Origin: Neoechinorhynchus agilis
Lineage: Eukaryota; Animalia; Acanthocephala
DNA length: 64,000 bases
Reading direction: 5' to 3'
NCBI GenBank assembly: GCA_051530055.1
Contig: CM121343.1
Coordinates: forward strand, 1,954,389-2,018,388
The translations under genes were made by a program, and so were the position numbers. The notes beneath the pieces are model-generated. The model saw only the letters and a program-made list of their open reading frames with translations, searched no databases and was not told the origin of the DNA. Below, one piece after another: positions 25,026 to 53,110 of the stretch. Positions within the stretch are counted from its first letter, which is position 1; every line of letters begins with the position of its first letter.

Positions 25026-25898
25026 GAGGCATTAACAACAGATACATTAGGTCGTGATAGTTAGTTGCGATGTGCCAAGTTTCACATCGCCTTAGAAAAA
25101 GGAGCAGAGTATGCTTCTGGCATTCTTCACAACACCATGACCCTAACCCGTTTCTTTTTAATATCATCAAGAACATTCTTGCATTAGTTTGAAAGTTGTT
25201 GGCGGCGGCGGCACTGTGAGTTCATGAGAGAAAGTGAACTCGGTTAAGTCATATGCATTCGTGATTGAGGTGTCAAAGTCCTCGAAGCACGTCCGGGTGT
25301 AAAATCACGGTGAACAAGGCGTCTACGTCTTACACGAGTTTCACAATTTTTCGCCGGTGCAATTGCTACACAAAGCCTTGGTTGGCGGATTTTGGGCGCA
25401 ACGCTGGACATTGTGGATCCAGAGTGGAGCCACCACTGTATGGGGAAGTGAAGATGCGCATCGAGGCGTAACGGCCTACGTCGCAGTAGAAGTAGTAGTA
25501 GTCGTAGTTTTGTCGAACACCACCGATTGTAGCTCGCTGTGCATGTGCATTGTTGGCGTTGATGGTGGTGGTAGTGGTTGTAGTAATAGCGGCAGAGCAG
25601 CACCACCAGCAGCACCAATAGAGCAGCAGCGTTCTAGTTAGCACTTGGGGTGGTACACCCCAACGCTCTCTCTCTCGCGAATGGGCGTCCTCAGCTTCCC
25701 ATTGCTTTGTGTGCTCTCACACCCCCGTTAAGGAGACGCTTTCAGTGATCTGAAAGGGAGATGGCGCTTGGCAATAAGTACTTACGACGTTCTTTTCCAT
25801 TAGTAGTCCTTTTATATGTACACACGAACACAACTCAGCGATGATGAACCTTCTCTGACAACCTTTTCTCAGATTTGGTGCATTCTCACCTTAAAGCA

Positions 25899-31331: not shown

Positions 31332-34300
31332 TGAAGTATCTTCACTCTTCATGATAAGTTTTATTAACGTTTTTTCAAAACCTGACCAACTGCAAAAACC
31401 AAAAACAAACGCACACACCCCCAAACATCGTTTGGTCATTATCGATCGGACGCGCAGTGCGTGTCACGATCGCTCACTATATAACATTTCTCCCCTCCTT
31501 AATTGAGACCGGAGGTGTCGCAATCGTTTAACCACTCAGGTCGACGTCGTATTCTCGTACTCCTTCGCAATGGGTCCGTGACATTGAATCCCCTTTCCGT
31601 CTCATTCGTTGGTTCATCATTGATGGGCTCATTGGGCGTTTGTTCCCCGTGCGGCAATTCCCCTGCCTTTGCTATGGCTACTGCTGGTCTCAGGTGATCG
31701 GCGTGTTTCCTCTCTATCCCTCTTTCGGTCCTAACTTCATAGGAGACGGGACCATTTCGATTCTCCACTCGCCCTGAACACCATCGTCGATCATGTTACG
31801 TCTTGCACCACACCTGCTCGTCCTTCTCGAACTCCATCCACTTTGAGCCTTGGTCGTGCTTATCCTTCCATTTTTCTTTGTTTTCCACCCTAGTGTCGTG
31901 GTCGTCCTTGTGAAGGTTATCGAATAGTACTCGAATTGGGCGTCCGAACATCGCCACAACAGGACTTACTCCGGTCGTCGCATTTGGACAGTTTCTGTAG
32001 CTTAATAGAAAGCTTTGTAATTGTTTTTTGTGCGCGCATCGAGGGAAACATCTGAAAACCCTCTCTTTTACTGTTCGAACAAATCGTTCGGCTTGACCGT
32101 TAGTACGAGGGTGGTATGGTGTCCAATAAATAGGTTTGCTTCCATTACTCATTAGGAAATCTTGAAACGTTTCGGATCGGAAGCTTGAACCGTTATCCAT
32201 GACCACCTTTTTTGGCAAACCGAAATGGCAGAATAATCGGCGCATATGAGTGACGAGGGTCGTCGCATCAGTCAAGCGCACTTCGATTACCTCTGGCCAC
32301 TTCGTGAACGCATCGACCACGATGAGCCACATTGTGTTCTGCACTGAACCAGCGTAATCTATGTGGATCCACTCCCATGGAGTCCTCGGCACATCCCAAG
32401 GTATCATGTCCACCTCTGGTTGCTTCCGTTGCCCTTCTTGACACGCCTGACATAGACTCACATAGTCTTCGATCGCTTTATCCAATCGCGGCCACCAGAC
32501 GTACATCCTGGCCAAAGACTTCATCGACGTACACCCGGGATGGCTGATGTACATTTTGAGAACCCAATCTCGCAACGCCTCTGGGATAATCATCCTACCC
32601 AGCCAAAATAGGATGTTGTTTTCGACCGATAGTTCTCCCTTCTTTTCGTAATATGTCCGTAAATCATTCGAAATCACTTCGGGCCATTGTGTCTTGATAT
32701 ACTTACACACCCTCGTCAGCACAATATCGTTTCTTAAACTCCGTTTCAACATCTCTGCGTTTATGAGTTTTGAATCGTCACAATATATTAGATCAATTTC
32801 ATTGACAAAACTCTCCACTGGTTCATTTGAAACTTCTGGTATTCTTGATAGTGCATCGGCATATACATTCTCTTTGCCTTTCATATATTCGATGGTGTAA
32901 TCATATTCGGCCAACACAATCGCCCATCTTCGCAAACGGTTACCATGTATCTGATTCAAGTCTTTTTTATGGCCGAATAACTACGTCCGAATAAGAAGTG
33001 GTGAAATTTCTTTATTCCAAACAATATCGCCCCGGCTTCTTTACCTATTGTTAAATAATTTTTTCCGCAGGTGATAAAGTTCTTGACGCATAAGCGATCG
33101 CTCTCCAGTTTCTCCCTTCCTGCTGCAAGAGTACCGCCCAAACCCCACTTCACTCGCATCACACGACAGGATTACCTCTTTCTCAACAGCATACGGCATC
33201 AACACTTTCGGATGTTCCATCAACTTTTTCGCTGCCATGAAACTATCTTGTTCTATTTTCCCCCATCTCCATGGAATCTTCGAACTGGTCAGTCTGTGAA
33301 GCGGACTACACACAGCGTGCAAATGTGGCAAAAATCGTTCATGGTGTCCTGCTGCTCCGAGGAAGGCTCTCAATTGCGTTCGTGTTTTCGGAGGTGGAAA
33401 ATTTATCATTGACCGCAATTTTGCTTGTGGTGCTCTTATTGTCCCCGATTCCCAGATCATTCCTAAAATCTCAACCTTTTCCTGGAGAAAACAGCATTTT
33501 CCTAACTTCAGTGTTAATCCTGTGTCTTCCAATCTCTGCAGAACTCGACGTAGGTTGTCTATGTGTTGCTCATCGTCGTTTCCGCTTATCACGATATCAT
33601 CTAAGTATACTGTGACATTCGGAATATCTTCTAATAACTGATTCATAAATCGCTGAAATATGAAAGGCGCTGAATAGATCCCAAATGGCAATCTCGTATA
33701 TTGATAATAACCCATAGGCGTTGTAATCGTCAATAGTTTTTGCGATTTTTGTGATATCGGTAACTGTAGGTAGGCATCCTTCAGATCGAGTTTGCTACAT
33801 TTCCATCCGGAACCGATCTTGCTTAGTATATCCTCGATTTTCGGAATTATACAACTGTCTCTTTTAAGATATTCGTTTATAGTGACTCGAAAATCACCAC
33901 ATACTCTGATCCTGTTATTCGCTTTCTTCACGAGAACGATCGGTGTGGCCCATTCCAGCGGTTCTCTCGTCGGATCCACTTTCCTTAGAACGCCGATTGC
34001 TTGAAGCCTGTTCATCTCCTCCAGTAAACATTCAACCACCGGAAGAGGAACTCTCCGTGCCGGAAAATTTTTGGACTCGCATCATCTCTCACTGACAATT
34101 CAACTTGATATCCCTTGATTTTCCCCAACTCATTCGAAAACAGTTTAGCATATTCCTTCTCTGGTTTCATCTCCATCTGATTTATTGGGGATACCACACC
34201 GATCCCCGTCCCTTGGTTTCCTCTCCAGATCGCATCTAACTGCACCGGAACTATACCAACAGCAGATATCCAATTTAGTCCACACAATGCTCTATCCATG

Positions 34301-35569
34301 GTTCGCACCACGGCAACTTCGACCATGGCTCGACGTCCCTCGAATTCCACCTCCATTTGACCAGTTCCCACAGTGTCGAGTGCCTGTCCACCATATGCTT
34401 TCAGGCGAAGACCCTCTCTAAGCGGTTTAGATCCTAATTGTGTCTAAATCCGCATCGGGATCACCGAGACACCGGCACCGGTGTCATATTCCATCTCCAC
34501 TGATCTTCCATTGACTTTAAGAATTAGCGTCCACTTTTGGTTTTGTCCAACAGCGTTGATGTTTCTAATTACTTCTTCCTCCTCTCCAATCTGTTTTACC
34601 TGCTTGACCTGCGATCGGAAACAATTCCGTGCAAAATGGCCAAATCTTCCACAGTTGAAACATCTTCCTCCTCGGCTGTTTGGAAATGTCTGAGAGTTTC
34701 CTCCTCGAAAAATACACGGCTCGTTGCTTTTATGAACTTTTCCACATCGATTATAGATGGTTCTTCTTCGATCATCGGCATGATTCCACTTCTCGAAGTT
34801 TCTCGCCACTACCCGGTCCTTCGTTTGTCTTACCTCCGCTATCACTCGTTCCATTGGGATGCATAGATCTAGGACTTGTTTCATCGATACAATTTTTTTC
34901 CTGTATCTCGTCTGGCCAACGGCACCTTATCTCCGTCTCGATTCGGGCATCGTTCAAACCAATAGCGAAACGATCCCGTAACCGTTCGTCCAAGTTTTCC
35001 CCATAGCTACAGCACACACTTAGCGCGCGCAATCGATCTGCAAACTCGTTGAAAGACTCACCATCTTTTCTATTGGCTTTCGAACGCAAAACGGGCAGCA
35101 AATATTGTCGTAGTTGGCGTAAGTAGATCGGTCATTGACTGAATAATTTCCTGGTAACCAAGATTACCGACATCCTTAGGAAATACATGTCTTTCCAATT
35201 TGCTTAGGTTAGTATCACCCATAAACGCCAATAGCAGCATCGCTTTCGCTTCGGACACCCGTTTCCCGATTCCGCGGATACCTTTTAACCATAGGTGTCA
35301 ATCTAAACGACGAATGCACGTTGTCCATCCTACGCCCGTGGATTCCGAACACGGGTCCATTCGGAACAGTTCTAACTTACGGTCCAAATCCTGAATCCCA
35401 CCGCTGTCACCAATTGAAGTATCTTCACTCCTCATGATAAGTTTTATTAACGTTTTTTCAAAACCTGACCAACTGCAAAGCCCAAAAACAAACGCACACA
35501 CCCCCAAACATCGTTTGGTCATTATCGATCGGACGCGCAGTGCGTGTCACGATCGCTCACTATATAACA
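31332..35569 (-). mobile_element. Full-length Ty3/gypsy LTR retrotransposon, Mag-like, frameshifted gag-pol
   Basis: LTRs 31332-31486 and 35415-35569 (155 bp, 3 differences, TG...CA). TSD CTATC on both sides. PPT at 31487-31499. PBS at 35393-35412 complementary to a tRNA-Leu-type 3' end (gaatcccaccgctgtcacca). Gag CCHC, protease YDTGAGVS, RT YLDD, RNase H and integrase with GPY/F-like tail, spread over several frames. Confidence 0.95.
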
Positions 35570-36049: not shown

Positions 36050-38577
36050 TATGCTGATAACTTTATTTTCCTTGTTTATAACAAAAGTGGGGAATTTCGT
36101 GCAGGTATAATTGAGAGTATCATCTTAAAAATACAAAGCATTTGTCCAAATCAAATCCAGCAGTGAAAAGAGTAAACAAGTCTAAATCCCGCCAAGCAAA
36201 ACAGCAGATGCAAAGCAAATTTTAATAAATAAATTAAATATGAACAGGTTTTAACATAACATGAAAAACGTTAACATGGACCTTATGACGTCGTTAATGG
36301 TCACTACATAGGCACCCCTCAAGAAGGTTCTTCCGTTTTTTTTGCGAGGTCTGCCTCGTTTAGGAGGTTCAGTGAGAATGACGGGTGATGTTGGATCGGT
36401 ATACGCTTGTTTGAGGCGATCTATCGGAACGTTCTCGGGTTTTCCACCGAGATCGATCATGAAAAACTTTTCGTTGCGATTAAGTACTTTGTAAGGTCCG
36501 GTATCCGGCGCCTGTATAGGATTCCCATGATGACCGCGTCTGACAAAAACGAACGATGCTCTGCTGAGAGCATTTGGTACAAACGTCGTCAATTTAACAT
36601 GGTTCTCAACGGGCGTGGGAGCAAGAGATTTAACTTTATTACGTCGCCGTTGTAGATGAGTGTGAGAATCGACTTGGCTAAGTGAGGAATTAAGAAAATC
36701 GGCAGCTATGTTGATGGCACCTTCATATACATGCTCTGCTGCCGAGGAATCAACGTCGGCTTTGGGCGCGGTGCGAATTCCTAACAAAATCCAAGGCAAT
36801 TCGTCAATCCAGTTGTTTCCGCAGAGGCGAGCTTTCAAAGCCGATTTCAGATGCCTGTGGAATCTTTCTACCATTCCATTGGATTTAGGATAATACGCGG
36901 TTGTACGGTGGAGCTTCATTCCTAAATGTTCTGAGATTGTTCTCCACAGCTCTGATATGAACTGCCGTCCTCGATCGGAGGTGATGTCGTTAGGAATACC
37001 AAAACGAGCTATCCATTGGCTGATAAGTGCTATTGCACACGTTACGGCGTCGGTATTATTTAAAGGAATCGCCTCGGGCCATCGAGTATATCGGTCTATC
37101 ACGGTTAATAAATGAGTGAAACCTTGTGATGCCGGTAGCGGACCTACTAAATCTATGTGGATGTGATCAAATCGACGTTGCGGAGGTTCGAAAGTAGAAA
37201 GCGGTGCTCGTATGCGTCTTTGAACCTTAGCCTTTTGACATCCGATGCATGAATGAACCCAGGCACCAACATCCTTTGATAAACCAAGCCAAACGTATCT
37301 TGTTTTAACCAATTTACGGGTGTCCATGATGATGGTACCAACGGTCTATCACGGCCAGTCGAAATGTCACACAAAATAGTTTGTCCTGTGCCATTGAAAG
37401 GAATTTCCTTCAACTGTAGCGAGGTATTCGCTGAACGATATGCCTGGATGTGTTGATCAGACTTTTGATCTTCTGCCATCGCTTCAAACGATATTCCTTC
37501 GGAAATACTGGCTAAATAATCAACGCGGGACAATGCATCGGCAACTTGGTTCTCTTGTCCACTAATATGTTCGATATTGGTCGTGAACTCAGATATATAA
37601 TTCAAATGTCGTTGTCGACGGGCTGACTAAGGATCCGAAACTTTTGTCATCGCATAAACTAAAGGTCGATGATCAGTATAAATCGTAAACGATCGGCCCT
37701 CGACGTAATATCGAAAATGTCGGACAGCAAAATACATAGTCAGAAGCTCGCGATCGAAGGTGCTGTACTGTTGTTCAGGTTTACGCAGTTGTTTGCTGAA
37801 GAATGCCAGCGGCTGCCATGAATCGGACACATTCTGCTGTAGAACAACGCCAATAGCGAACTCAAATGCATCTGTACTGAGAGAGATTGGTGCGTCGGTC
37901 ACTGAATGTGAAAGCATCGTTGCGTTTGCTAGAACGGCTTTAGTTTTTTCGAATGCTGAAGCCATTTCAACTGTCCAAGAAAAACTTCGTAGATTTATTT
38001 TACCAGAAAACGCTTGGTAGAGCGGACGCATCGGACGGGCTGCCAAAGGGATGAAATGATGATAATAATTTACCATACCATCAAATCCTTGCAAAGCTTT
38101 GGTGGATGTTGGAGGAGGGAAGCTGCGAATCGCGCTTACTTTATCTGGCAATGGTACTGTACCCCGTCCACTCACACGGTGTCCTAGGAAACCGATCTGT
38201 TCTACCCCGAACTCACACTTATCTGGGTTCAGAACGAGGCCGTACTCCGAGAGTCGATCGAACAATGTTCGTAGATGTTTCCTGTGCTCAAATCGATTTG
38301 AACTCGCGATCAGTATATCATCTAAGTAGACGAAAGCAAAATTCACTCCTGAACAAACCGTATCTATTCCTTACGTCGACCACTAAACCTGAGTGTCGAA
38401 GGAAATCAGCGCCTAGGATAGGGTGTTTAACCGCGACAAGAGTGAACATCCATTCCGTCTGAGTTTTACCAAAATTCAACTGCAATAGCTTGTTGCCGAA
38501 TGTTGAGATTGTTGAAGCTGTAAGTACTCTGCTGGAGTGTTTGGTCTGTTTATCGAGTGTTGTGGCTGGAAGGATGA
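36050..38577 (-). mobile_element. 5'-truncated Ty3/gypsy element (CsRN1-like) with an internal deletion between protease and RT
   Basis: Protease C-half (HPILGADFL) is joined directly to RT FVYLDD, followed by RNase H (YSTFDRELL) and integrase (HIHIDLVGPLP...PPKRGRPRK). PPT, then TGTAGTG LTR start at 36308. The LTR end is not defined. Confidence 0.85.
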
Positions 38578-40077
38578 GTGGTTTCCTCAGGAGCGGATTT
38601 CGTTTCAAGATTGAAATCGTCTTGGAATTCCCAGTATAGGATGCTGTCGGCAGATGTGATCTCCCTCTTCACCAAAATTCCTGTCGATGTGGCAATAGAT
38701 CTCGCAGTTCCTCTCCTGTCCACGAACACTGAATGGAATTTAACTAATAGTGACTGGCGAAAGCTATTGCAGTTTTGCACCAGATTCTGCAACTTCCAGT
38801 TCAACGGCATCGACTATGATCAGAAAGATGGAGTAGCAATGGGCAGCCCGTTAGCCCCTGTGCTTGCTGAGCTAGATATGCGGCACTGGGAGGACGAACA
38901 TTTGCCGTCGATACAGGGGGTTAATATCTGGTTCAGATATGTGGACGACACGTTCCTGTTGATCGACCCTTCAGAGACTAAAATGAATCGCCTTAAACAT
39001 GAACTGAATGGAAGGGACGACAATATTCAGTGGACGATCGAGGAGGAGGACCATGGTAAGTTTCCGTTCCTGGATGTGTGGATATACCGATTAGCCAGTG
39101 GAAACTACACGACCAGCGTGTACCGAAAGAGAGGTATACCAGTGGGCCTTGTGCCATGGACATCAGCCCAACCTCGCAAATACAAAAATTCGAGGATTAG
39201 GTCACTCATCCATCGTGCTCTTACACATTGTAGCAACGCTAAGTTGTGTAACGAGGAGATTGATTACCTAAAGTACATATCAGGTCGATATGGTATCAAG
39301 CTGGATAATATCATGCTTGTTGATCCTGTTAAACAGCCTTTCCGGATAAAGATTATTGATTTTGGGTGGGCTATCACTCCAGATCCAACGGCGAACTATA
39401 CGTGCATTCAAAATCGAATTTACCGTGCTCCCGAAATCATAATCGGATACCAATTCATCGAGTCAATCGACATGTGGAGTCTAGCCGTAACTCTGGTGAC
39501 ACTCTATCTCGGATGCTATATGTATCCCGGATATTTTGAGTTCGAGCAACTCAAATACATTACGGACACTCAAGGACCTCTTCCCATGGACATGCTCATT
39601 CGCGGAACAAAAACTGCGCAATTTTTCGATGTATATAGGCAGAATTCCGGCGACCTTGTATTTGAGTTAAAGAACGTCAACTCCTACAACGCTGAAACGG
39701 GTCTTTTATTTCGGGAACGGCGACGATACCAACTTCATTCATTGGATGACCTTGCTATTCTGGTTTTGCGTGGCGAAAATATTGGCCCAAACGCCGCAGC
39801 CCAGGAACTTGACCGTCTATGTTTTACTGATTTGATGAAGAAAATGCTGACACTCGATCCACACGTTCGAATGAGTGCAATTCTTGGATTAGAACATCCA
39901 TTTTTGACTTTGGATCATTTATTCGCTGAACCCGAATACCTTCAAGGGAGCCGCAATGATATGAAGGTTTGTCCAATTACAAGCTACCATCACAAACGTC
40001 TTCAGGACGAACAGAGACCGTTACTGAATACCTCGTGGCTTATTGAAGATTATAGGGGAACTCAGCGGAATATTTGA
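38578..40077 (+). CDS. Chimeric ORF: Penelope-like RT core/thumb fused in frame to the C-terminal half of the HIPK-like kinase
   Basis: About 239 aa of PLE RT (ADVISLF, GVAMGSPLAP, FRYVDD, FPFLDV) run into IKLDN...IDFG...RAPE at 39294. The kinase part is near-identical to 51265-52038. Confidence 0.8.
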   Translation: MVSSGADFVSRLKSSWNSQYRMLSADVISLFTKIPVDVAIDLAVPLLSTNTEWNLTNSDWRKLLQFCTRFCNFQFNGIDYDQKDGVAMGSPLAPVLAELDMRHWEDEHLPSIQGVNIWFRYVDDTFLLIDPSETKMNRLKHELNGRDDNIQWTIEEEDHGKFPFLDVWIYRLASGNYTTSVYRKRGIPVGLVPWTSAQPRKYKNSRIRSLIHRALTHCSNAKLCNEEIDYLKYISGRYGIKLDNIMLVDPVKQPFRIKIIDFGWAITPDPTANYTCIQNRIYRAPEIIIGYQFIESIDMWSLAVTLVTLYLGCYMYPGYFEFEQLKYITDTQGPLPMDMLIRGTKTAQFFDVYRQNSGDLVFELKNVNSYNAETGLLFRERRRYQLHSLDDLAILVLRGENIGPNAAAQELDRLCFTDLMKKMLTLDPHVRMSAILGLEHPFLTLDHLFAEPEYLQGSRNDMKVCPITSYHHKRLQDEQRPLLNTSWLIEDYRGTQRNI

Positions 40078-41142
40078 CACGAAGACTCTTCGGACAAGAA
40101 TTTCACCATTTGGACAACAATCTTGGAATTTAAAAATAAAACGTTTGGTCAATATTTCTTGCATGGCGCAATGCTATATTTATAGAAGAGATAAAAATTT
40201 AAACGGGTTTATCAAGAAAATACAGAATCCATTTCGTTGAATTTTGTTGTCTTTATCATAGAATTTGCGATCTTGGTAAATCTCGAAAGTCATTAATTAT
40301 TTCTATGTTTTAATTAGTTAATTCTTGTGATCTACGAAGCTACTCCTTTATTTGTTTTTAAATTCTCTAAAAATAGGGCCAAAATTTTGATGCATTGTGC
40401 AATTGCTAGATTTAACAAATAATATTATCGGATCAACATTTATCCGAAATTTTTAAAAAGTTTGTTTAAAAACTTAAAATCTCATATATTCTAACCATTA
40501 TAAAAATATAAATATTTTTGATGGGCAATGGACTTTAAAAGAAATCTAAAGAAATTAAATTCAATTGCCGGCTTTAAAATGATATAATTGCATAAGAAAC
40601 TAGAATTAGAAGTTGAGTTTTCTTATTATTTGATATGCTTCTCGCGTATCGACCGACAGCAAAAAAAATAATACTGTCATCGAATAAAAATTTATTGCGC
40701 ACTTGCTATTGTATTAACTTTTCCGAAAAATATTATTTGATATGAAACAATGATAATGTCTCTTGTTTACAATGTCGTTCCTCTTTCTTATATAACCGTC
40801 AATAATACGCTTGCTCGATTTTTCCCGACGTCGAATGACCGCTTAATTGCTGCATTCAGCTTATTATTTAGCATCGCCGCGCCAATTACATTAAAAGAAA
40901 ACGTGCCAATCTTTTCATTGTTCAACTTGTCTTCCCAGCGAAGGACAAAAATTTATTTATTTATTTCGTGTTTTTCTGACGTGATATCTTCTCTATAATG
41001 ACAAATCGATATCTTTTTCATGGAAGCCGAGTGCCATTCGGGCTTTGGTAACTGGAATACCTACGTTGTGTTTCGTTTTTCATTTATTTGGAAAGATTTT
41101 CTCTCGACCGAAAGCAAAAAAACCAGTGCAAGGTTGATTTCC

Positions 41143-42039: not shown

Positions 42040-42700
42040 AGGATTGAAGTATTTTCCGGTTTGCTTCATACCATCCCCAATAAGCTGGCAGAGAAATATC
42101 GGCTCCTTTTCTGATACCCAAATCGCCGGAGGCCTCGTCCGAGTGCTGAGTATTTAAAATTTTCTCGAGAGAGGTTTTTACCATCTCGTCTAATTTTGCC
42201 TGTATATCCTTATGTCTAGAAAAGGTGCTGTGCAGAACTTATGCAACAATTTTTGAATGAAGAGGTGGTTTTTATTAGAAACAGAGCCTCGTGCGAAGTT
42301 AATTCATCAACTAATTCGCACAGTACCGAAAGTTGCAGTTGAAGATTGACAATCTCTGCTTCTACATTAGAACCAAAAGTGCAGCTTCCTAGAAGACTCG
42401 ACCGGTTTAGAGTGATCAATTCTATCCTGGGGCCATGTTCTGGAAATCCTTCACGGTAGTTTTCCTGTTCGCCTCATCTTCCACGTTCATCACTAAAATC
42501 TCGCATTTCGCAGCATTCAATTCAATGCCAATTTTCGCCGTCTCCTTCACGAGTGTCTCCGAATCCGGCACCATAAAGGTATCAGCCGTTAAAGTTTGAC
42601 TGGAGAGAATGCGCGACGGGATTGAATGCGAGTGAGAAGGCTATCGGGCCCAAAGGATCCCTTGTTGAACTTCTATTTGTGACCCTGTTGTTGTTCAACA
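42040..42700 (-). pseudogene. Degenerate CRE-like non-LTR retrotransposon RT fragment
   Basis: Fragmented RDPLGPIAFSLAFNPVAHSLQS, HEALFLIK and GDLGIRKGADISLPAY resemble CRE-clade motifs (GDPLGP.LF, H.AL.LL, GGLG+R....ALPA). Confidence 0.55.
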
Positions 42701-43197
42701 ACCACGTTTTGTGGAGAGAAATGAGGAAATTCGGGTGAATGCCAATGGAAAATGATCTTATGATCAGTATGATTTGATGTTCAATAACCACGTTTTGTAT
42801 TCAGAAACAATACCCACTCCGAATGCAATAGTGATCACCATTAGAAGACATTCACCAATAGACGAGACGGTGAAAGCATCGGCGATAAATGATTTTGAAC
42901 CCCTTTGACCCTGAAAAAAAGGATGTCATTTACGACGTTTAATCGTACAAAGCTAGATTTAAACGATCTTATTTATTGATTGTTTGTACCGTTGCTGCAG
43001 TCATTAAGCAAAGCTGATTTTATTTCCAGTGCTAAAGAGAGCAATCGCTTATAAGTAAACTTGAATTGGATTTAATTACAAAAAACAGAACTAATTAAGC
43101 TTAAATACGTTGGCTCTACGGATTGATCACCATGGCAACTAAATATCTAATATGTTCAAAATTTAGTAGTGGGACGTTCATCAACTTCATCTTCAGA

Positions 43198-43539
43198 ATG
43201 GAAACACCGTGCCACGACTACCCACTCCAAGGCATGTACGTCGTCAATTTGGAAGTTCAACACGGTTCAACGATGTTGCCGTTGTACTTGCAAAGAGATA
43301 GACCTATCAGAGTATCGGATCTCCAAGAGAAAATCGCGAAGGTTTCATGCATTCCTCTGTGCATGCAGCGAATTTACTTTGAAGGACAGTACCTCCATCG
43401 ATGGCCTAACGCACGGCTCTTGGACTTTGGCGTCGTGAATGGAGTTCGTTTAACTCTTGCCGGCACCACCTGCACAAGACACGATCCAAAGTGCACTGAG
43501 TGTCTCGTTTGTAAGGATGCCAACGTTTGTTATCACTGA
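43198..43539 (+). CDS. Small ubiquitin-like-domain protein (BAG1-type UBL) with a Cys/His-rich C-terminal tail
   Basis: VNLEVQHGSTMLPLYL...VSDLQEKIAKVSCIPLCMQRIYFEGQYL...LLDFGVVNGVRLTLAG fits the UBL pattern. Tail is CTRHDPKCTECLVCKDANVCYH. Confidence 0.65.
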   Translation: METPCHDYPLQGMYVVNLEVQHGSTMLPLYLQRDRPIRVSDLQEKIAKVSCIPLCMQRIYFEGQYLHRWPNARLLDFGVVNGVRLTLAGTTCTRHDPKCTECLVCKDANVCYH

Positions 43540-43855
43540 GGGCGACAGAGTTAAAATTATTTACTGACCAAAAATAAGCTTTTTGAATGAGTACAATGCT
43601 TTTGGAAAAATAGGGATGGATTGCAAGCTTTGCGGCCAACTATTGAGTTTCGTGGTAAGACTGCCAGTAATATCAATGGCGGAAAACACTAATCTGGGGA
43701 ACAAAGAGACGCATCCACGAAAACTCTGAGTTAGTTTCAATGCAGTCTGTCAATATAGAGGTGAATCTCTTTGCGGCCTGATATCACGTGCCTATTGGGA
43801 TTATTTTAAGAACGTCTCTAGGCAAAACTCGTACAATATTCCCTTCAAATGGAAT

Positions 43856-44353
43856 TTAATTTTGTACTGGTGATAGGATTTTTAGGCCCACAATCAATGG
43901 ACTTTGGGGATGAACCGGAACCGCCGCAGCGTGAATCACGGGGCCATGAACCCTTAGAACTCCTGTTTTCATCAGGGAGAAAATCTCATCACAAACCTCA
44001 CAGAATCCTGCTGAGAAGCACGCTCGTGTTTTATCCATTACAACCCAATTCACGAGTTTGTGTTCATATACCGGTTCATTAAAAGATCTAATTCGCAGTA
44101 ATCTGTATTTTATACCCGAGAAAGGAAATAAGAATTCAGCACAGTAGGGACAAATTATAGCATTGATTGTCGATGGAATGCGACTTCTAAAATCGAATTG
44201 TCGACCGCATTGCTTTATGTTCATGGGCACCGGTATGAGAAAGTAAAGCATCGTGTACAAAACTGTCGGAATCATTGAATCATATAGCGTTTGTAATAAA
44301 TTCCATTCAAGGTTTAAGATAATCTTTTCCCTGAACATTTTATCCGATTTCAA
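43856..44353 (-). CDS. Possible RNase P subunit Rpr2/RPP21-like zinc-ribbon protein
   Basis: RIPSTINAIICPYCAEFLFP...YRL...CEVC gives two CxxC pairs in an Rpr2-like context. Similarity judged by eye only. Confidence 0.35.
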   Translation of the reverse strand: MKSDKMFREKIILNLEWNLLQTLYDSMIPTVLYTMLYFLIPVPMNIKQCGRQFDFRSRIPSTINAIICPYCAEFLFPFSGIKYRLLRIRSFNEPVYEHKLVNWVVMDKTRACFSAGFCEVCDEIFSLMKTGVLRVHGPVIHAAAVPVHPQSPLIVGLKILSPVQN

Positions 44354-44853
44354 GCGCTACAGAAACTTCGCTGTGAACAATGTCGATTTAGAACGATACA
44401 ATTCTTTAAAGCTTGTTACTTTTCCAAAAGAAGGGGTTTTACTTGCTCGTTAAAATGACGATAAATGTACTATCTCACCTGCAAAGATGCTCTCGAAATG
44501 CGTTGTAAATAAGCTCAGAATAAATAAAAAAACGCATTTATCGATTTTCTTGGACGAACATTCCAGTTTTGCACAACACATCCCTCGGATTATTGAATCG
44601 TGACAAGGATTAAGAGGTTTTTGGTAGAATTCGAATATCAGTAATCCTCCATTAAGATGACCTTGTAAATCATGTGATGTGTTGCGGAAAATAAAATCCT
44701 GTTTATAATTTGATTCCAAGTGATCATGTGATCGAATAATTTGCTGCTCTTAAATGAGGGCAATCGCCACCTTTACATAAAGTTTTGTGAACGTTATAGA
44801 TCTCAAATTTATTTAACTGCAAATTTTTTAACCGCAAAAATCAGAAAAGGGCA

Positions 44854-45606
44854 ATGGAGACTCAAGCAACTACGACAAATCAAAATGCACCAATTAATAA
44901 CGATCAGCGAAATCAGAGAGAGACGGCCAAAATCCAAATAATAATCCAACTATTGAAAATAACTCGACTAATGTTAATTTTCAAGGCCAACCCCAATTTC
45001 AGGAGCAGAGCTTTCAGACAACGGCAACCGCAATTTCGCCATCGAACCGCCAAGCGTTGATCCCGCTATGTTCAATCTGTAATGAAGTTCACCCTTATGA
45101 AACCGTTCCAAATCAAAGACTGTTATCTGTGCCCGTTGTACCAGTTCAAAAAGCGAGATTTTACAGACTGCGAAGAGGGTATACCTTTAAATCCGATAGA
45201 TTTAACTATGTTGCCCAATCGATTATTGGCCACGGATCCTTTGCCAATGTGATAAAATGCATCCAACAAGAAAGTGGAGTTCAGGTTGCGCTAAAGGTTC
45301 AAACTTACCGTTCGTCAATAGCAAGCGATGCCGAAGTAAAAATTCTCCGAAAATTAGAGATTAATAAGGCACGTGATTTTAACATCGTTGCTACATTTGA
45401 CGCTTTCCAACAGAATTGTCATCAATGTATTGCATCTGAAACGCTTGCGATAGACATGTTCCAATATCTCAAAAAGAGAGATTTCAAACCCTTGGCACCA
45501 AAGTTGAGACAACTACGGATTATCCACGCTGATATCAAGCTGGATAATATCATGCTTGTTGATCCCGTTAAACAGCCTTTCCGGATAAAGATTATTGATT
45601 TTGGGT
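44854..45606 (+). pseudogene. HIPK-like kinase pseudogene, N-terminal half only
   Basis: Paralog of 50533-51326 with a frameshift near 44920, a 45-bp in-frame deletion (KPLAPKL vs KPLALRFIRPIADQCFAALAKL) and truncation right after IDFG. Confidence 0.85.
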
Positions 45607-45972
45607 AGTTCTCTGAACGTCGGAAATGACGATCCAGAATTCCTGTGTCGTACAAAATAAAAAAATAAAAAATATAAAATATTTCCAATCAGAGATTTTG
45701 ATCAACACATCCCCGAGAACAAAAAAGACGACTGTGAACGAGTATTATGAACAGTGGTGGGTCCGCTCATTAATGACGATTTTTAAGCAGAGACAGACCC
45801 ACTCATATCAATATGTCTTGGATTATTATTTTCGGGGGAAAGGATACTACTTTTTGGTAGTTTAGCCACCCGGATCCGGGGAGGGGGTAGCAAAACTACG
45901 AAAACAAAGGAAAATCATATCAATATGTTGTCTTTTTTCTAATCGATCACTTACTTAAATATTACAAGAAAT

Positions 45973-48447
45973 CATTCATTATTACTGTTGGGTGGAACGA
46001 GATTTGTTTTGTGCGGACACCCAGACGTTTTTTATTATGCAAATTTTCGGAGAGCAAAGTCTCCCTCTTCAGACTTAAGACATGCCGAGAAAACAGCATC
46101 ATACCTAACTGCGCAAAATTAAAATCGGGGATGATCGGCTTCGATAATTCTAATCTCAGAAAAGAAATGGAAATGAGACTGGTCAGGTTCGGCATCCAGG
46201 AAATGAGAGGACGTTATTCAGGTTATAACGAAAAACGACTAAGATTATGGGAATTCCTCATTCGAAAACTGGAATCGCACGACATAAAATTTATGACGGA
46301 CCATGTCAACAAAAGTGGTAAGAAACACGAAGACAAAATCAAGGCCGGGGATGCCAAAAAGCTTAGAAAACTGGGAATTCGTAAAGAAAACGATATAGGA
46401 CCCGAAGCTATTAACTTATCATCGAAAAATCTAAGCGAGGATGTAATGAAGGTTCTCAATCCGGGACCAGAATTCGTACCTTTTAAGCGAATGAAAGATT
46501 CTCAGATAAGATGCGATTTTGAAATTATGATGAAGAGAGTACCAGGAGAAATCAAAAGTCGTATCGCTGCCTGTGATACTAGGGCCATAATTGAAAACCG
46601 TCGCGGAAAACATAACATCGAAGCAGCAGAAAATTCTGAAAATGCTCAAGGAAGATAGGACCATCACGATCTGCAAAGCAGATAAAGGTAGAAATCTTGT
46701 AGTGGTGAACACTGAAGATTACCAAAAACAAGGAGATATACTTCTTCAGTCAGGAAAATTTAAAACGCTAGAGATAGATCCCACAAAGAATAGGAGCAAG
46801 AAACTTGGAGTTTTTGAAGGATCTGAAGCGTAGGAAGATGATTTCGGAGGAATTTTATTACAAAACCAAATCCACATCGTCCTACACACCGTTTCTCTAC
46901 CTGTCTCCGAAGATACATAAACCCCAACTACAATTCCGCCCAATAATCGCAAATTACGGATCATTCAACCATAACCTTGCGCGAATGATCAATATGCAAA
47001 TGAAAGTCATTGCAGAAGACGATTGGTTCTCTAAGGTCAAGGATGGAATAGAATTCTCTAAGAGAATAAGGGGAAGATGCTCAGAAGGAACCTGGCATGC
47101 CACAGCAGATGTTGAGGCGCTGTTCACGAATCTCCCTCTTATGAAGGCATCCAGGATGGCAACGAACCTTCCTGCCGAAAAGTGCACGACACCAGCGCTC
47201 CCAGCCAAGGATTGGCTAACCCTAATCCGATGGTGCACACGACAAAATGCGTTTACTTTTGAAGGAAGGGTCTTTGAACAAATAGATGGAGTCGCTATGG
47301 GGTCACCGATAGCACCGGCGCTCGCGGACATCTACATGAGGAAATGGGAGGAGAAGATAAAAGATAGGATACCCCAAATCAAGGAGTGGATACGTTATGT
47401 AGATGATGTGTTCATCGTCCTTAACGAAGACCCTAGGAAATGTAACCTTTTGGAAAGGCTGAACGAAGTAGACCCAAGCATAAAGTGGACCATTCAATTT
47501 GAGGAAAACAGGAGAATTCCATTTCTAGACGTGATGGTAAATCGAGGAAAAAGAAGAATAAACACAAGTCTCTATAGAAAGGAACATTTGAGTTGGCGAT
47601 GCCCACATTGGAGAAGCCACAAATCAAGGACATACAAAATATTGGCAGCAAAAGCACTGTATGCGAGAGCCAAACAAATATGTTCAAGTGCTTCGTGCTT
47701 CAAGGTGGAAGAAGATAAAATTACTAAAATGTTAAGAGAACAAGGATATCCTAACCAATCTATCAAACAAGCCAGGATGAAGATGTGGGGAACTATCAAA
47801 AAAGGAGATCAAAAGGAATGCGTAAAAGAAAACTCGATATGGTTGGGAGGCCGCTTCATTAGCGACGTATGCACGGCGAACGTTAGGAAGGCAACCCAGG
47901 GGATTCCTTGTAGGTTTTATACCAAAGCTGGTGGAACCCTTGCGGGGTACTTCAAGAGGAAGCCAGAAAGGAAGCACGACGCAGGGGTATACGGCATACC
48001 GTGTAAAGATTGCAATGCGGTCTATATAGGTCAGACCATCCAGGGACTGAAGAAACGCATTCAACAGCACAAATATAACGTGCGAAAAGGAGACACCGCG
48101 TCAGCGATTTTCAACCATATCTCCATACACGACCACGAGGTCAATTTTGAGGGCGCCAGGATGCTAGTGCAGGAAGAAAACCTGGAGAGGAGGTTGACAA
48201 TGGAAGCCCTGATGATTAAAAAAGAAGACCACCTTATGGAGGGCAACAAAAGTAATGTCACGCTTATGTTGCAGCCGGAAGAGGTTAAAACATGGTCCAG
48301 GATCCAGGATGCTACCGGGCAAGAGGCATTTTTTAAAAGAGATTCTCAAGACAATAATTTTTTCAGATGACCAAAAGCCTGAAGAGGGAGACTTTGCTCT
48401 CCGAAAATTTGCATAATAAAAAACGTCTGGGTGTCCGCACAAAACAA
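45973..48447 (+). mobile_element. Penelope-like retroelement (RT + GIY-YIG) with an inverted 5' pseudo-LTR and 12-bp TSD
   Basis: KADKG, LSPKIHK..FRPII, GVAMGSP, RYVDD and GIY-YIG GVYGIPCKDCNAVYIGQT. Two frameshifts near 46640 and 46810. 71-bp identical inverted repeat at 46002-46072 and 48379-48449. TSD attacaagaaat at 45961-45972 and 48448-48459. Confidence 0.93.
48377..48414 (+). ncRNA. Minimal hammerhead motif in the Penelope pseudo-LTR (second copy on the minus strand at ~46037-46074)
   Basis: CTGAAGA-G-GGAGA/ctttgc/TCTCC-GAA-AATT (palindromic stem III)-T-GC. Stem I is short and imperfect. Confidence 0.55.
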
Positions 48448-48464
48448 ATTACAAGAAATGTATT

Positions 48465-50010
48465 CTCGTGTGATGAAACATCGGCATGTGCTATTTTCTG
48501 GAAATACTTTAATCGCCTAAAAACTTGAATAGAAAATTTTTTTGTTCTTTTTAAAGGCTTTTTTGGAAGTCAACTCAAAAGATCCTTTTGATAATTAAGT
48601 ACTCGAGAGAAACTATTTGATTTGCACTTAGAATTTGTGAGGAAATCGATGGGAAATTTTGAATCTTCTATCTTCGAGTTTTCGTTCAAAGTTAGCAGGG
48701 GAAATGGTTGTCTCCCTTCGTTGATATTCAACGGACAATTTGGATTATTTATCAGATGAAAGCAGCAAAAGCCAGAACTGATTAGAAAACAAAAAATCAG
48801 TCTTTTTTATTGAATCCGTTGATGGTGATTACGGCAACAAAATAAATACCTTTCTAGATGAAATGCTACGAGCTACTTCATCGAGTGAGGATTTTAAGGG
48901 CGATTAAAGTGAAGTAACAGATATATTTTGTGATTAATAAGGAATAAATCTATATATTTTTTGTGTATTGTCCTATCCTCCCAAGTATATAGTATCGCAA
49001 TCAATTAATGGTCTACAATGCGGGGTGCAACAGGAGAAAACCATCATTAACTTAGCATTCTTGGAAGCTTGACCGATGATATACCAATGCAACTAATATT
49101 AAATACCAGAACGTAATGAATATCTCTAAACGAATGGAAAGTATAATGGAAATGCTAGCGAATGTAAAGGGAATCCATATCCTGAGTATGGATAAAAACA
49201 ACGAATTCTGTGTCCTAAATGAAACGCAATATAGGAGAATGGCAAATGAAAGTTTAAATGATACATCCCTTCAAAAGTTAAATGTCTCGCCAGCGGCCAA
49301 AAGGGAAAAAGAGCTTAACAGCCTTCTCCTAAGGCTTACAAGAATGGGAAAAATCCCTGAGACCTACTACAAAGATATGCTCGCACTCCCAAAATGTACA
49401 TCCCGACCAATAATAGCAGCTCATTGCTCATACAGTAACAAGGTCGCCTTAAAATTGACAGGTTTTCTGAGACCCAGTCTCGTAAGCAGAGACAGATACA
49501 ATCAAATCAATATTTCGTTTTATTTCCAATCGATCAGTTAATTAAATGTAACAATATATCTTGTGTGATAAACAATCGACATGGGCTAATCTTCGGGAAT
49601 ACTTCAATAGAAAATTTTTTGTTCTTCGTAAAAGCTTTTTTTGGAAGTCAACTCAAAAGATCTTTTTGACAATAAAGTACTCGAGACTTCGAGATGATGT
49701 TCAAAGTGAGCAGGGGAAATGGTTGTCTCCCATCGTTGATATTTAACGGACATTTTAGATTATTTGTAAAGAAGGAAGGTTACTCTATGAATGTAAGTTC
49801 AAAATGCATCCGTTCATTTAGATGCGGACAAGAGTGGAAAGATAGAATGAACGTTGCATTTCTAGCAACTGCGAAAAAAGTTTGTTTGTGAGGACGAAAA
49901 ATCCGTCCTTTGATTGAATCCGTTGATAGTAATTGCGACAAAATAAATATTTTTTAGATAAAATTATACGAGCGACATCACCGATTTAAGATTTTAAGGG
50001 CGATTGAAGT
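48465..50010 (+). repeat. Diverged direct duplication (48465-48930 vs 49560-50010) flanking a PLE fragment
   Basis: Shared blocks gaatagaaaatttttttgttct...ggaagtcaactcaaaagatc, caggggaaatggttgtctccc and gattttaagggcgatt. Confidence 0.75.
49116..49500 (+). pseudogene. Penelope-like RT N-terminal fragment (third, distinct PLE)
   Basis: IHILSMDKNNEFCVLNETQY...LLRLTRMGKIPETYY...LPK..SRPIIAAHCSYS matches the PLE ADKG...LPK.HK..RPI region. Confidence 0.65.
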
Positions 50011-50532
50011 GACGGCACATTGGATTCCTGACAAATATTAAAAATGTTTTTGGTAGAATTCGAATATCAGTAATCCTCTATCAAGATAACCTTTTAAATC
50101 ATGTGATGTGTTGCTAAAAATAAAATCCCGTTGATAATTTGATTCCAAGTGATCATGTGATCGAATAATTCGCTGCTGTTGAATGAGGACGTTAGAAAGG
50201 ATCTATTTCATGAAGCTTTAAGAAAACGAAATTCTGAGCAACACAAGTTAGAATCTGCATTGTCAATAAAGCAAGTATATATTTTTGTAATTGTTTTTGG
50301 ACCTGTTGTTCTGATGATAATGCGCGGATTGAGCAACAGTTTAAATGGTTTGTACATCTCTTCGATGTTAGCGGTCTTCGTGATGAGGATATGGATCGCA
50401 CGAATAGTTCATGTGTTCATCGAGACTTTCAAGGGAAAAGACTGCCACCTTTACATAAAGTATTGTGAACGTTATAGATCTCAAATTTATTTAACTGCAA
50501 AGTTTTTTAACCACAAAGTTCAAAAAAGGGCA

Positions 50533-52038
50533 ATGGAGACTCAAGCAACAACGACAAATCAAAATGCACCGATTAATAACGATCAGCGAGATCAGAGGGA
50601 CTACCGCAATCCGAACAATCATCCAACTCATGAGAATAACTTTACTAACGTTAATTTTCAAGGCCAACCCCAATTTCAGGAGCAGAGCTTTCAGACAACG
50701 ACAACCGCAATTTCGCCATCGAACCGCCAAACGTTGATCCCGCTATGTTCAATCTGTAATGAAGTTCACCCTTATGAAACCGTTCCAAATCAAAGACTGT
50801 TACCTGTGCCCGTTGTACCAGTTCAAAGTGCGAGATTTTACAGACTGCGAAGAGGGTACACCTTTAAATCCGATAGATTTAACTATGTTGCCCAATCGAT
50901 TATTGGCCACGGATCCTTTGCCAGTGTGATAAAATGCATCCAACAAGAAAGTGGAGTTCAGGTTGCGCTAAAGGTTCAAACTTACCGTTCGTCAATAACA
51001 AGCGATGCCGAAGTAAAAATTCTCCGAAAATTAGAGATTAATAAGGCACGTGATTTTAACATCGTTGCTACATTTGACGCTTTCCAACAGAATTGTCATC
51101 AATGTATTGCATTTGAAACGCTTGCGATAGACATGTTCCAATATCTCAAAAAGAGAGATTTCAAACCCTTGGCACTGAGATTTATAAGACCTATAGCAGA
51201 TCAGTGCTTTGCCGCTCTTGCAAAGTTGAGACAACTACGGATTATCCACGCTGATATCAAGCTGGATAATATCATGCTTGTTGATCCTGTTAAGCAGCCT
51301 TTCCGGATTAAGATTATTGATTTTGGGTGGGCTATCACTCCAGATCCAACGGCGAACTATACGTACATCCAAAATCGAATTTACCGTGCTCCCGAAATCA
51401 TAATCGGATACCAATTCATCGAGTCAATCGACATGTGGAGTCTAGCCGTAACTCTGGTGACACTCTATCTCGGATGCTATATGTATCCCGGATATTTTGA
51501 GTTCGAGCAACTCAAATACATTACGGACACTCAAGGACCTCTTCCCATGGACATGCTCATTCGCGGAACAAAAACTGCGCAATTTTTCGATGTATACAGG
51601 CAGAATTCCGGCGACCTTGTATTTGAGTTAAAGAACGTCAACTCCTACAACGCTGAAACGGGTCTTTTATTTCGGGAACGGCGACGATACCAACTTCATT
51701 CATTGGATGACCTTGCTATTCTGGTTTTGCGTGGCGAAAATATTGGTTCAAACGCCGCAGCCCAGCAACTTGACCGTCTATGTTTTACTGATTTGATGAA
51801 GAAAATGCTGACACTCGATCCACACGTTCGAATGAGTGCAATTCTTGGATTAGAACATCCATTTTTGACTTTGGATCATCTATTCGCTGAACCCGAATAC
51901 CTACAAGAGAGCCGCAATGATATGAAGGTTTGTCCAATTACAAGCTACCATCATAAACGTCTTCAGAACGAACAGAGACCGTTACTGAATACCTCGTGGC
52001 TTATTGAAGATTATAGGGGAACTCAGCGGAATATATGA
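50533..52038 (+). CDS. HIPK: Intact intronless HIPK-like (DYRK family) Ser/Thr kinase lacking the HIPK C-terminal domains; frame is open upstream to 50161
   Basis: GHGSFA, VALK, AEVKIL, HADIKLDN, IKIIDFGWA and YIQNRIYRAPEIIIG...IDMWSL...EQLKYITDTQG match the HIPK kinase domain, with catalytic residues present. Confidence 0.85.
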   Translation: METQATTTNQNAPINNDQRDQRDYRNPNNHPTHENNFTNVNFQGQPQFQEQSFQTTTTAISPSNRQTLIPLCSICNEVHPYETVPNQRLLPVPVVPVQSARFYRLRRGYTFKSDRFNYVAQSIIGHGSFASVIKCIQQESGVQVALKVQTYRSSITSDAEVKILRKLEINKARDFNIVATFDAFQQNCHQCIAFETLAIDMFQYLKKRDFKPLALRFIRPIADQCFAALAKLRQLRIIHADIKLDNIMLVDPVKQPFRIKIIDFGWAITPDPTANYTYIQNRIYRAPEIIIGYQFIESIDMWSLAVTLVTLYLGCYMYPGYFEFEQLKYITDTQGPLPMDMLIRGTKTAQFFDVYRQNSGDLVFELKNVNSYNAETGLLFRERRRYQLHSLDDLAILVLRGENIGSNAAAQQLDRLCFTDLMKKMLTLDPHVRMSAILGLEHPFLTLDHLFAEPEYLQESRNDMKVCPITSYHHKRLQNEQRPLLNTSWLIEDYRGTQRNI

Positions 52039-52214
52039 CACGAAGACTCTTCGGACAAGAATTTCATCATTTCGACAACAATCTTGGAATTTAAAAATAA
52101 AACGCTTGGTCAATATTTCTTGCATGGCGCAATGCTATATTTATAGAAGAGACAAAAATTTAAACGGATTTATCAAGAAAATACAGAATCCATTTCGTTG
52201 AATTTTATTAGTAC

Positions 52215-53110
52215 AAAATACTTTTCGTCATACGAAGTACAACATCTCAATGAACTACTTCGAAATTCGCCTCTCCCAAACTGGGTTCTTCGCTGCATCA
52301 TCCCCGAACTTCTCGACCCTCTTACCCACATTATAAACCTCAGCTTTTTATATAGCATCTAACCCTCTTTCCTGAAAACTGCCAAAGTTATACTCGTTCC
52401 AAAAAAGGGCATCCTATTTCGGTCGAATCATTCCGTTCAACTTCCATTCTACCCGTTCTTTCAAAAATCATCGAAAAATGTTTCAAATCTTGCCTTCTTC
52501 CACTCCACGAAAAGTTATCGCCCCTACAATTTGGCTTCCTACTCTGATTTTCTGCAACCGATGCCCTGCTTTGCATTTATGACACGCTCCTACGTAACCT
52601 CGACAATAATCCCTCCCATGTCACCCGTCTCCTTCAACTTGATTTATCTGAAGCTTTCGACTCAGTGGACCATCCACTCCTTCTCCGGGCCTGCTCCGAT
52701 TTTGGTCTCAACTTGTGGCAGATCCGCTGGCTCGAATCTTATCTTCTCAATCACAAACATTACATTCACTGCCGTTCTACCTCTTCAATCAGCCTATCCA
52801 TCACGCTGTGCTGTCATCACTTCTCTTTAATATTTTCCTAAACAACCTCAAACCTCTCTTCTTTCACTCTAAACTTTTCTTATACGCTGACGATATCGCC
52901 CTCATCACCCATTCACCACCCCACCTCTCCCTTTCTTTAACCTCTAAAGAAATCACATGGGAGATTTCTGCACCAATTAAAAACTCTACCTGAATTTCTC
53001 TAAATGCTTCGAAATGATCCCATCTTTGTCCCTCAATCAAACTTGAAATGGGACTCGAAAATTTCTAATTCCCTCAAACACAATACCTTTAAAATCTACC
53101 TACTCAAACG
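52215..53110 (+). pseudogene. Degenerate CR1/L2-like LINE RT fragment
   Basis: Broken frames: PLTHIINLSF, KTAKVILVPKKG, SILPVLSKIIEK, LQFGF, DLSEAFDSVDH, LFNIFLN, LYADD. Confidence 0.75.

Follow-up and report, generated by a model that had tools for sequence, protein, structure and literature searches.

A stop-free frame joining a Penelope-like reverse transcriptase fragment to a HIPK-like kinase C-lobe in the acanthocephalan Neoechinorhynchus agilis, most likely a chimeric pseudogene

A stop-free frame of 499 codons in the genome of the acanthocephalan Neoechinorhynchus agilis joins an internal piece of a reverse transcriptase (RT) gene from a Penelope-like element (PLE) to the C-terminal lobe of a HIPK-like protein kinase. 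Most likely it is an ordinary transposon–host chimeric pseudogene with some unexplained structural regularities; we put at about 0.55 the probability that it is a non-functional chimera, made by DNA-level rearrangement in a transposon island and in frame by chance. The frame lies in a stretch of 64,000 nucleotides (the window) of chromosome CM121343.1 (7.82 Mb; assembly GCA_051530055.1), base 1 of which is at ∼1,954,389 of the chromosome. All coordinates are those of the window unless labelled L004–L007, which denote four other N. agilis HIPK-like loci used for comparison.

Anatomy of the chimeric frame

The chimera and the kinase copies with which it is compared are as follows.

38578..40077, + strand: the chimera, a frame of 499 codons without a stop, with GTG as its start and its first ATG at codon 22
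38578..39290, + strand: fragment x, an internal PLE RT piece with motifs A–E and the thumb, as far as 'GYP'
39291..39293, + strand: junction triplet TGG, placed by comparison with kinase copies B and C
39294..40077, + strand: coding part of kinase copy A, the C-lobe from 'IKLDN' to the stop
40078..40248, + strand: non-coding 3′ flank of copy A, common to copy C (6 differences in 171 nt)
44595..45606, + strand: kinase copy B, 3′-truncated, comprising an upstream region and the N-lobe and ending at DFG
50020..52209, + strand: kinase copy C, an intact intronless HIPK-like gene, from self-comparison and Pfam

An earlier note on this DNA, made from its letters, had described a stop-free 499-codon frame of PLE RT and HIPK kinase, and the description is borne out. 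The frame occupies 38578–40077 of the + strand, is immediately preceded by a TGA (38575–38577) and ranks fourth in length among the stop-free frames of the window. Codons 1–238 are the PLE RT piece and codons 239–499 the HIPK-like C-lobe.

Fragment x is 35–46% identical to proteins that carry PF00078 and PF26215 (along with PF28514 and, in some, GIY-YIG). Aligned to full-length PLEs, it begins just before motif A (SADVISLFTKIP), keeps GVAMGSPLAP, YVDD, FLDV, YRK and the thumb, and ends in 'SGRYG', the counterpart of the PLE 'NGYP' motif; it spans PLE residues ∼347–590 only. The RT core, the PF26215 thumb and the 'GYP' linker place it among the PLEs, and the Pfam RVT_1 profile alone is sub-threshold in the chimera (22.2 vs 29.6 bits; positions 70–167 of 205). 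Missing are the N-terminal domain, RT motifs 1–2 (the fingers) and the GIY-YIG endonuclease, for which a Pfam scan found no match in the chimeric open reading frame (ORF) and one in the neighbouring PLE y. Judged by its sequence, fragment x is a PLE fragment and not an element. Because 238 random codons of its base composition would be stop-free with a probability of ∼1.5e-6, it is a recent copy of a working gene rather than a chance ORF. No other copy of 38347–39293 or of 40249–40995 was found in the window or in L004–L007; those four loci hold only scattered, unrelated PLE fragments, and neither fragment x nor its junction with copy A (x|A) recurs there. That the RT frame extends farther upstream, across an intron (GTAAGT at 38510, acceptor at ∼38590), was considered and rejected: the upstream + frame contains stops, and the minus strand there appears to read as a retropepsin (flap Gly, ILGADFL and a decayed DSGATHS-like site).

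The kinase half matches HIPK2/3 at E=1e-50 (query 239–452 to HIPK2 144–356) and DYRK1A at 3e-17, so that its best similarity assigns copy A to the HIPK type within the CMGC/DYRK group. Copy A covers positions 124–263 only of the 263-position Pkinase profile and begins 'G-IKLDN', where Gly occupies the position of the HxD aspartate. A complete catalytic domain would comprise the Gly-rich loop, the VAIK lysine, the alpha-C glutamate, HxD, DFG and APE, and copy A falls short of this set. The kinase half had been said to lack both the ATP-binding lobe and the HxD aspartate; the profile limits and the Gly codon at HxD agree, and the further statement, that the product cannot be an active kinase, is likewise correct. 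With the RT parts that fragment x has lost, neither half can act as an enzyme. A third feature calls for a different reading. The activation-loop change from Tyr to Cys is real (39404, TGC vs the TAC of copy C, at the HIPK2 autophosphorylation site), but it is no sign of inactivation. The residue is natively Cys in other N. agilis HIPK-like paralogues, including the intact P0250 and P0395; because intact paralogues carry Cys or Val here, the Tyr is not diagnostic, either of the local family or of inactivation.

Across the join the letters are cga tat gg|t atc aag, and homology to copies B and C runs from 39294 (TATCAAG). If one mismatch is allowed, kinase homology begins at 39291, where the chimera has GGT and the intact gene GAT, the codon of the HxD aspartate. 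In the TGG triplet two G's may have been added without a template after the PLE 'TAT', or the triplet may be a kinase TGA with an A-to-G change; on either reading the x|A junction holds 0–3 nt of filler or microhomology. No splice-site logic was seen at this junction, and a join that preserves the frame has a 1-in-3 chance. The passage from RT to kinase in frame at 39294, at the PLE 'GYP' position, stands as first described, with 'SGRYG' aligned to 'NGYP'.

Kinase copies and the origin of the join

Copy C, 12 kb downstream of copy A, is the intact relative. Its frame, open from 50161 to 52038, probably has its Met at 50533 and specifies a Pkinase domain that is complete (GxGxxG, VALK, HAD, DFG, APE); the copy C stretch also takes in an upstream region and the 171 nt of 3′ flank. 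Between copy A and its counterpart in copy C (51255–52209) there are 20 differences in 955 nt, an identity of 97.9%. Fourteen of these are coding, nine synonymous and five non-synonymous. Copy B differs from copy C by a frameshift, a 279-bp gap and a 45-bp in-frame deletion. Its kinase part is 98% identical to that of copy C (10 differences in 550 nt) and its upstream part only 87–93%, a mosaic of old upstream and young kinase sequence that suggests gene conversion with copy C. Copies A and B are both on the + strand, A 5 kb upstream of B, and the two pieces tile one gene in reverse order.

The local genes belong to a wider family. Further short intronless HIPK-like paralogues lie on other N. 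agilis chromosomes, and a long, canonical-looking HIPK lies on CM121343.1; P0250 and P0253 are intronless, like copy C. Recent duplication in this family is not confined to the window, because P0250 and P0395 form a near-identical pair on CM121341.1. The pair (L004 10001–11377 and L005 10001–11704, at ∼18.94–19.00 Mb) is in opposite orientation, a few tens of kb apart; P0250 is intronless and the P0395 model appears spliced. Upstream of the P0395 locus, at a distance of 3.5 kb, is a PLE RT fragment (L005 6204–6530, minus strand).

From these data we infer the following order of events. A local intronless HIPK-like gene, represented by copy C, would have been partly duplicated, copy A keeping the C-lobe and 3′ flank and copy B the upstream region and N-lobe. 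Illegitimate end-joining or deletion would have set copy A beside an internal fragment of a young PLE RT gene, with at most three bases of ambiguity or filler at the join, while the far side of the RT fragment abuts a decayed Ty3/Gypsy pol. That no stop interrupts the frame would follow from the recent copying of both pieces from intact genes. Its product, if made, would be without RT fingers, endonuclease, kinase N-lobe and catalytic aspartate.

A DNA-level origin, which the earlier note had also preferred, fits best with the homology that continues through 171 nt of non-coding flank, the 3′-truncated copy B, the deletions nearby and the missing marks of retrotransposition. Copy B is informative here because simple reverse transcription of an mRNA, by target-primed reverse transcription, cannot give a 3′-truncated copy. 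At least four other deletion junctions lie in the vicinity: within the Gypsy remnant at ∼38346, in its protease at ∼38577, in the PLE remnant Z described below, and at the 45-bp and 279-bp gaps of copy B. Microhomology-mediated deletions and truncated PLE copies have been described from transposon islands of bdelloid rotifers, the sister group (PMC3846280). Of the two downstream flanks that had been taken as shared between copies A and C, the first holds (171 nt, to 40248). The second (40996–41093 vs 53119–53211) is probably a separate, older repeat, because unrelated sequence parts it from the A/C block on both sides and its identity is only 88.8%.

The elements around the kinase copies are the following.

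36251..38577, minus strand: decayed Ty3/Gypsy-like pol remnant, with integrase, RNase H, the C-terminal part of RT, and protease (ILGADFL)
40996..41093, + strand: 98-nt repeat, common to 53119–53211, 88.8% identical (94% over the first 78 nt)
46002..48449, + strand: PLE y, nearly full-length and of a different family, with a 521-codon RT + GIY-YIG frame and 75-nt inverted ends
48520..50019, + strand: old PLE remnant Z, with an N-terminal ORF piece (49101–49481) between direct repeats
52210..53037, + strand: immediately 3′ of copy C, a dispersed repeat whose RT-like frames (YADD) are broken and which terminates the A/C homology

The Gypsy remnant has lost the N-terminal part of its RT internally at the first of these junctions and ends at the second, where fragment x begins; no pair of long terminal repeats (LTRs) was found for it in the window. 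Downstream of copy A follow 747 nt of unique sequence (30% GC, without a long minus-strand ORF) and then two short dispersed repeats. Because this sequence is unlike the Gypsy interior, which is 43–46% GC, an insertion of the chimera into the Gypsy element is unsupported.

PLE Z lacks RT and endonuclease. Its direct repeats D (48520–48919) and D′ (49598–50019) are 80–89% identical, and its ORF piece z (49101–49481) is followed by GTAAGC and a 47-nt intron-like stretch. The end of D′, a terminal repeat of PLE Z, coincides exactly with the start of the B/C homology, that is, with the 5′ boundary of copy C; no terminal repeat that would frame copy C together with D′ was found after it. B–Z–C looks like a 1.3-kb duplication of the kinase gene around the PLE Z insertion, copy B corresponding to copy C coordinates ∼50020–51328. 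Z|C would be another RT–kinase junction if D and D′ encoded a diverged RT, but no significant RT similarity was found in them. PLE y is nested in a partial copy of PLE Z. Its N-terminal part is in another frame (one frameshift near 46810), its 75-nt inverted terminal repeats are 99% complementary, and it may have been active recently.

Could the join instead have been made from RNA? A PLE RT, during target-primed reverse transcription, would have copied the 3′ part of a HIPK-like mRNA or read-through transcript, then switched template to PLE RNA at the 'GYP' codons and terminated prematurely, leaving a 5′-truncated PLE–kinase retrocopy that would still be non-functional. The layout suits such a jump: an internal PLE piece stands 5′ of the 3′ part of a host transcript, the PLE is 5′-truncated, and the junction has 0–3 nt of filler or microhomology (TAT GG TAT). 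The kinase gene is intronless, so that mRNA and DNA donors cannot be told apart. PLE fragments lie at three kinase-copy boundaries within 12 kb (x|A, B|Z and Z|C), and rotifer PLEs capture host DNA, mobilise host genes and have been proposed as builders of chimeric ORFs (PMC3846280).

The marks that retrotransposition should leave are absent, however. A template-switch retrocopy should end in a tail at the transcript end, with the target continuing on both sides, and the chimera has neither. No target-site duplication was found around it, no direct or inverted repeat (PLE terminal repeats included) flanks 38578–40248, and a search for the hammerhead or any other Rfam family gave nothing, even at E up to 1. 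Neither a poly(A) or simple-repeat tail nor an A-run is present at 40248. An AATAAA stands ∼60 nt past the stop of copy A, and the A/C homology ends ∼110 nt past it, ∼80–90 nt beyond the cleavage site to be expected from that signal. The upstream flank is the interior of the Gypsy pol; the downstream flank is unrelated and does not resume the Gypsy element, and no repeat joins the two. The 3′-truncated copy B cannot arise by a template jump, and only a single copy of the junction is known. We therefore consider a template jump possible but unlikely.

Some regularities nevertheless weigh against independent breaks, and with them against the rearrangement that we prefer. The last 74–77 nt of copy B are the first of copy A (45530/3–45606 = 39291/4–39367), an overlap with a chance of ∼7%. 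Fragment x, moreover, starts at PLE residue ∼347, within ∼5 residues of the point where the z remnant ends (∼342), 10 kb away. Independent breaks predict neither the overlap nor the abutment in PLE coordinates, and each hints at a single structured event. Two findings on the kinase half and its annotation, given in the next section, belong on the same side of the balance. The simple idea that z and x are halves of one copy suits their abutment but not their ages: z is old and degenerate (its flanking repeats are those of 80–89% identity), x looks young, and they share no DNA by which to compare them. A more elaborate possibility is that the chimera is a footprint of Penelope-driven exon shuffling, the PLE machinery having made the partial HIPK-like copies. 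Copy B would then be a 1.3-kb target duplication around PLE Z, copy A a template jump that swapped GIY-YIG for the C-lobe, and the A/B overlap and z/x abutment the joint signature of one PLE-mediated event. We regard this combination as quite unlikely.

The regularities could also point to the assembly. The N. agilis genome is a MaSuRCA/Flye hybrid assembly of Illumina and Oxford Nanopore Technologies (ONT) R9.4 reads from ∼50 pooled worms, with very little HiFi, and was processed with purge_dups, instaGRAAL and TGS-GapCloser (PMC12690905). The junction or the order A...B...C might thus have been made during hybrid assembly, Hi-C scaffolding or gap closing, in a repeat-dense region with near-identical copies, whose kinase pieces tile one gene in reverse with the overlap just described. 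Copy B, for one, starts at a HinfI site, one of the two kinds of site (DpnII and HinfI) at which instaGRAAL cuts. Yet just one of 12 breakpoints (that start) falls on a restriction site, vs ∼0.5 expected; the x|A junction is at least 28 nt from any DpnII or HinfI site, and the window contains no N run. The two sides of x|A share no repeat able to mislead an assembler, and real substitutions and different flanks separate copies A, B and C, so they are not collapsed or duplicated haplotypes. In the same vein, A and C as misplaced haplotypes can be dismissed, their flanks being unrelated except for the 98-nt repeat. An artefact has, in our estimate, only a small probability.

Selection, database records and gene models

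The dN/dS (non-synonymous to synonymous rate ratio) check proposed in the earlier note was run on the kinase half, for the pair A and C. The pairwise value, for both lineages together, is 0.15 (nine synonymous and five non-synonymous differences; Fisher p=0.0007). The non-coding flank is 3.5% diverged between A and C, vs a dS of 0.055. A low ratio is compatible with a very recent truncation, with gene conversion or with a C-lobe that is still constrained; most simply, A remained an intact paralogue until recently, or undergoes gene conversion with C. Neutral drift of A since the split would predict ∼17–19 non-synonymous changes, and the probability of five or fewer among 14 is ∼0.02, which is the first of the two further points against the preferred reading.

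These numbers bear on whether the chimera does anything. It might be transcribed and translated, probably from Met22 or Met246, and its catalytically dead C-lobe, with or without the RT-derived N-terminus, might engage partners or substrates of the copy C kinase as a decoy or scaffold. The 499 stop-free codons, a dN/dS below the expectation of full neutrality, and the BRAKER gene called on the kinase half speak for a product. Recent truncation or gene conversion would explain the low ratio equally well, however, and the clearly broken copy B is just as close to C. A C-lobe without its N-lobe and an RT palm without fingers would be unlikely to fold stably. The frame starts at a junction with antisense Gypsy sequence, with no evidence of an upstream exon or promoter, and copy A carries a Glu-to-Gly change (39947) that is probably derived, since most relatives retain Glu. 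We infer that the chimera is without function, and rate a functional role as very improbable.

The databases lend such a role no homologue. No protein matching both halves occurs in the best 150 of a HMMER scan of 1.84 billion representative proteins, an absence that is telling because a true RT–kinase fusion would outscore any single-domain match. Nor does any of the 120 matches listed from a 5.8-billion-protein search hold both halves in one protein. Other RT–kinase chimeras, a search for which had been proposed, thus appeared neither among these matches nor, as a copy of the junction, at L004–L007. Two sets of candidates fell away on inspection. P0242–P0249, which scored high with several aligned stretches, have two or three kinase domains each in Pfam and no RT, and the apparent 80% query coverage of P0006 is, beyond the junction, a gappy and insignificant extension into the PLE linker and endonuclease, with no kinase.

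Exact look-ups of the 499-aa ORF, its Met22 version and the 619-aa frame of copy C returned no record. The only 100% match is P0241, a deposited 238-aa model on copy A that starts at Met246, contains a 48-nt intron by prediction and leaves out the RT half. Gene models for N. agilis were made with BRAKER2 after repeat masking of the genome (PMC12690905), so little weight attaches to the missing RT half; this is the second of the points announced above. A 'fusion' in any functional sense is unsupported all the same: the RT half is truncated on either side and lies against a decayed Gypsy remnant, no RT–kinase protein is found elsewhere in the databases, and the deposited model is of the kinase half only.

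Copy B also carries a model. A deposited 370-aa protein (43198–45608, with a Pkinase match) joins an unrelated upstream ORF to the frameshifted copy and is probably a chimera of annotation; a ubiquitin-like identity for the ORF at 43123–43539 found no Pfam support. For the intact copy C no gene model was found in the protein collections, though the broken copies A and B both have one. The chimera is thus mainly a caution to annotation, which has placed models on broken copies, a 238-aa 'kinase' on A and a 370-aa hybrid on B.

The wider window and known systems

Two dispersed families (52210–53037 and 42217–42684), one of them with YADD, recur beside HIPK-like paralogues elsewhere at 73–81% identity. 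Copies on other chromosomes are at L005 20534–21287, L006 13576–14357 and 11870–12577, and L004 6506–6789. Other transposons in the window include a minus-strand Ty3/Gypsy element (31332–35569) with 155-nt LTRs that are 98% identical (31332–31486 and 35415–35569) and with gag/protease, RT/RNase H and integrase frames split into several ORFs, and a further Gypsy-like pol remnant (61675–63915, minus).

Two tandem arrays occur, one of a 151-nt unit in ∼20 copies with a higher-order period of 302 nt (16576–19556), the other of a 111-nt unit in ∼11 copies spanned by a repetitive 263-codon minus-strand frame (20510–21719). There are palindromes at 22072–22282 (211 nt, 93% complementary) and 26487–26653 (167 nt, 83%), the latter with a related copy at 58234–58332. 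Host genes comprise titin/twitchin-like Ig/FN3 exons (947–12463, minus), an HMG-box protein (14366–15625, minus), an aquaporin (∼23970–25030), a ROCK-like kinase (26966–31104) and a RasGEF (55454–57353, minus).

PLEs are abundant in Syndermata. If the x|A junction is real, transcribed and recurrent, it would document in-frame shuffling of host coding segments by PLEs and, once supported by reads, offer a natural example for the study of PLE template jumping. Were exon shuffling the true history, PLE-driven expansion of gene families in rotifers would extend to acanthocephalans and include in-frame capture of host domains. PLEs have been implicated in the expansion of host gene families in rotifers (PMC3846280).

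One known setting close to this is that of the bdelloid Adineta vaga, where PLEs lie in transposon-rich islands beside expanded host gene families. They show partial tandems, inverted terminal repeats and microhomology deletions, and chimeric ORFs by template jumps have been proposed (PMC3846280). In A. vaga the transposition of a mobilised gene is proved by an empty allelic site, and the gene stands between PLE terminal repeats with an 8-bp target duplication (PMC3846280). Both species are Syndermata, and in the N. agilis window PLE pieces likewise border three HIPK-like gene copies. Unlike the A. vaga gene, copy A has no PLE terminal repeats or target duplication; its partner is an internal RT fragment, and one copy is known.

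Template switching by the LINE-1 RT gives chimeric retrocopies such as U6–L1 and mRNA–L1, which end in poly(A) and are flanked by 10–20 bp target duplications. The N. agilis chimera resembles them in joining two unrelated transcribed sequences head to tail and in one orientation, with a truncated 5′ partner and a sharp junction of little or no homology. It differs in that no poly(A) or target duplication was found and that the enzyme would be a PLE RT, for which we know of no established host-mRNA chimeras.

The kinase half itself is of a familiar kind. Like members of the HIPK/DYRK group (CMGC), it has a C-lobe, 40–45% identical to those of HIPK2/3, with a HIPK-type insert after APE. Unlike canonical HIPKs, the local genes are short (430–620 aa), intronless, lineage-specific and without long C-terminal regions. 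Taken as a whole, the feature resembles ordinary partial duplicates and transposon–gene pseudogenes in repeat-rich DNA, in which a truncated recent paralogue of an intact gene nearby is joined to transposon pieces, catalytic parts are lost, a single copy exists and deletion junctions surround it. What sets it apart from them is the in-frame join, the unusual length of the frame (499 codons) and a count of non-synonymous changes lower than neutral decay would leave.

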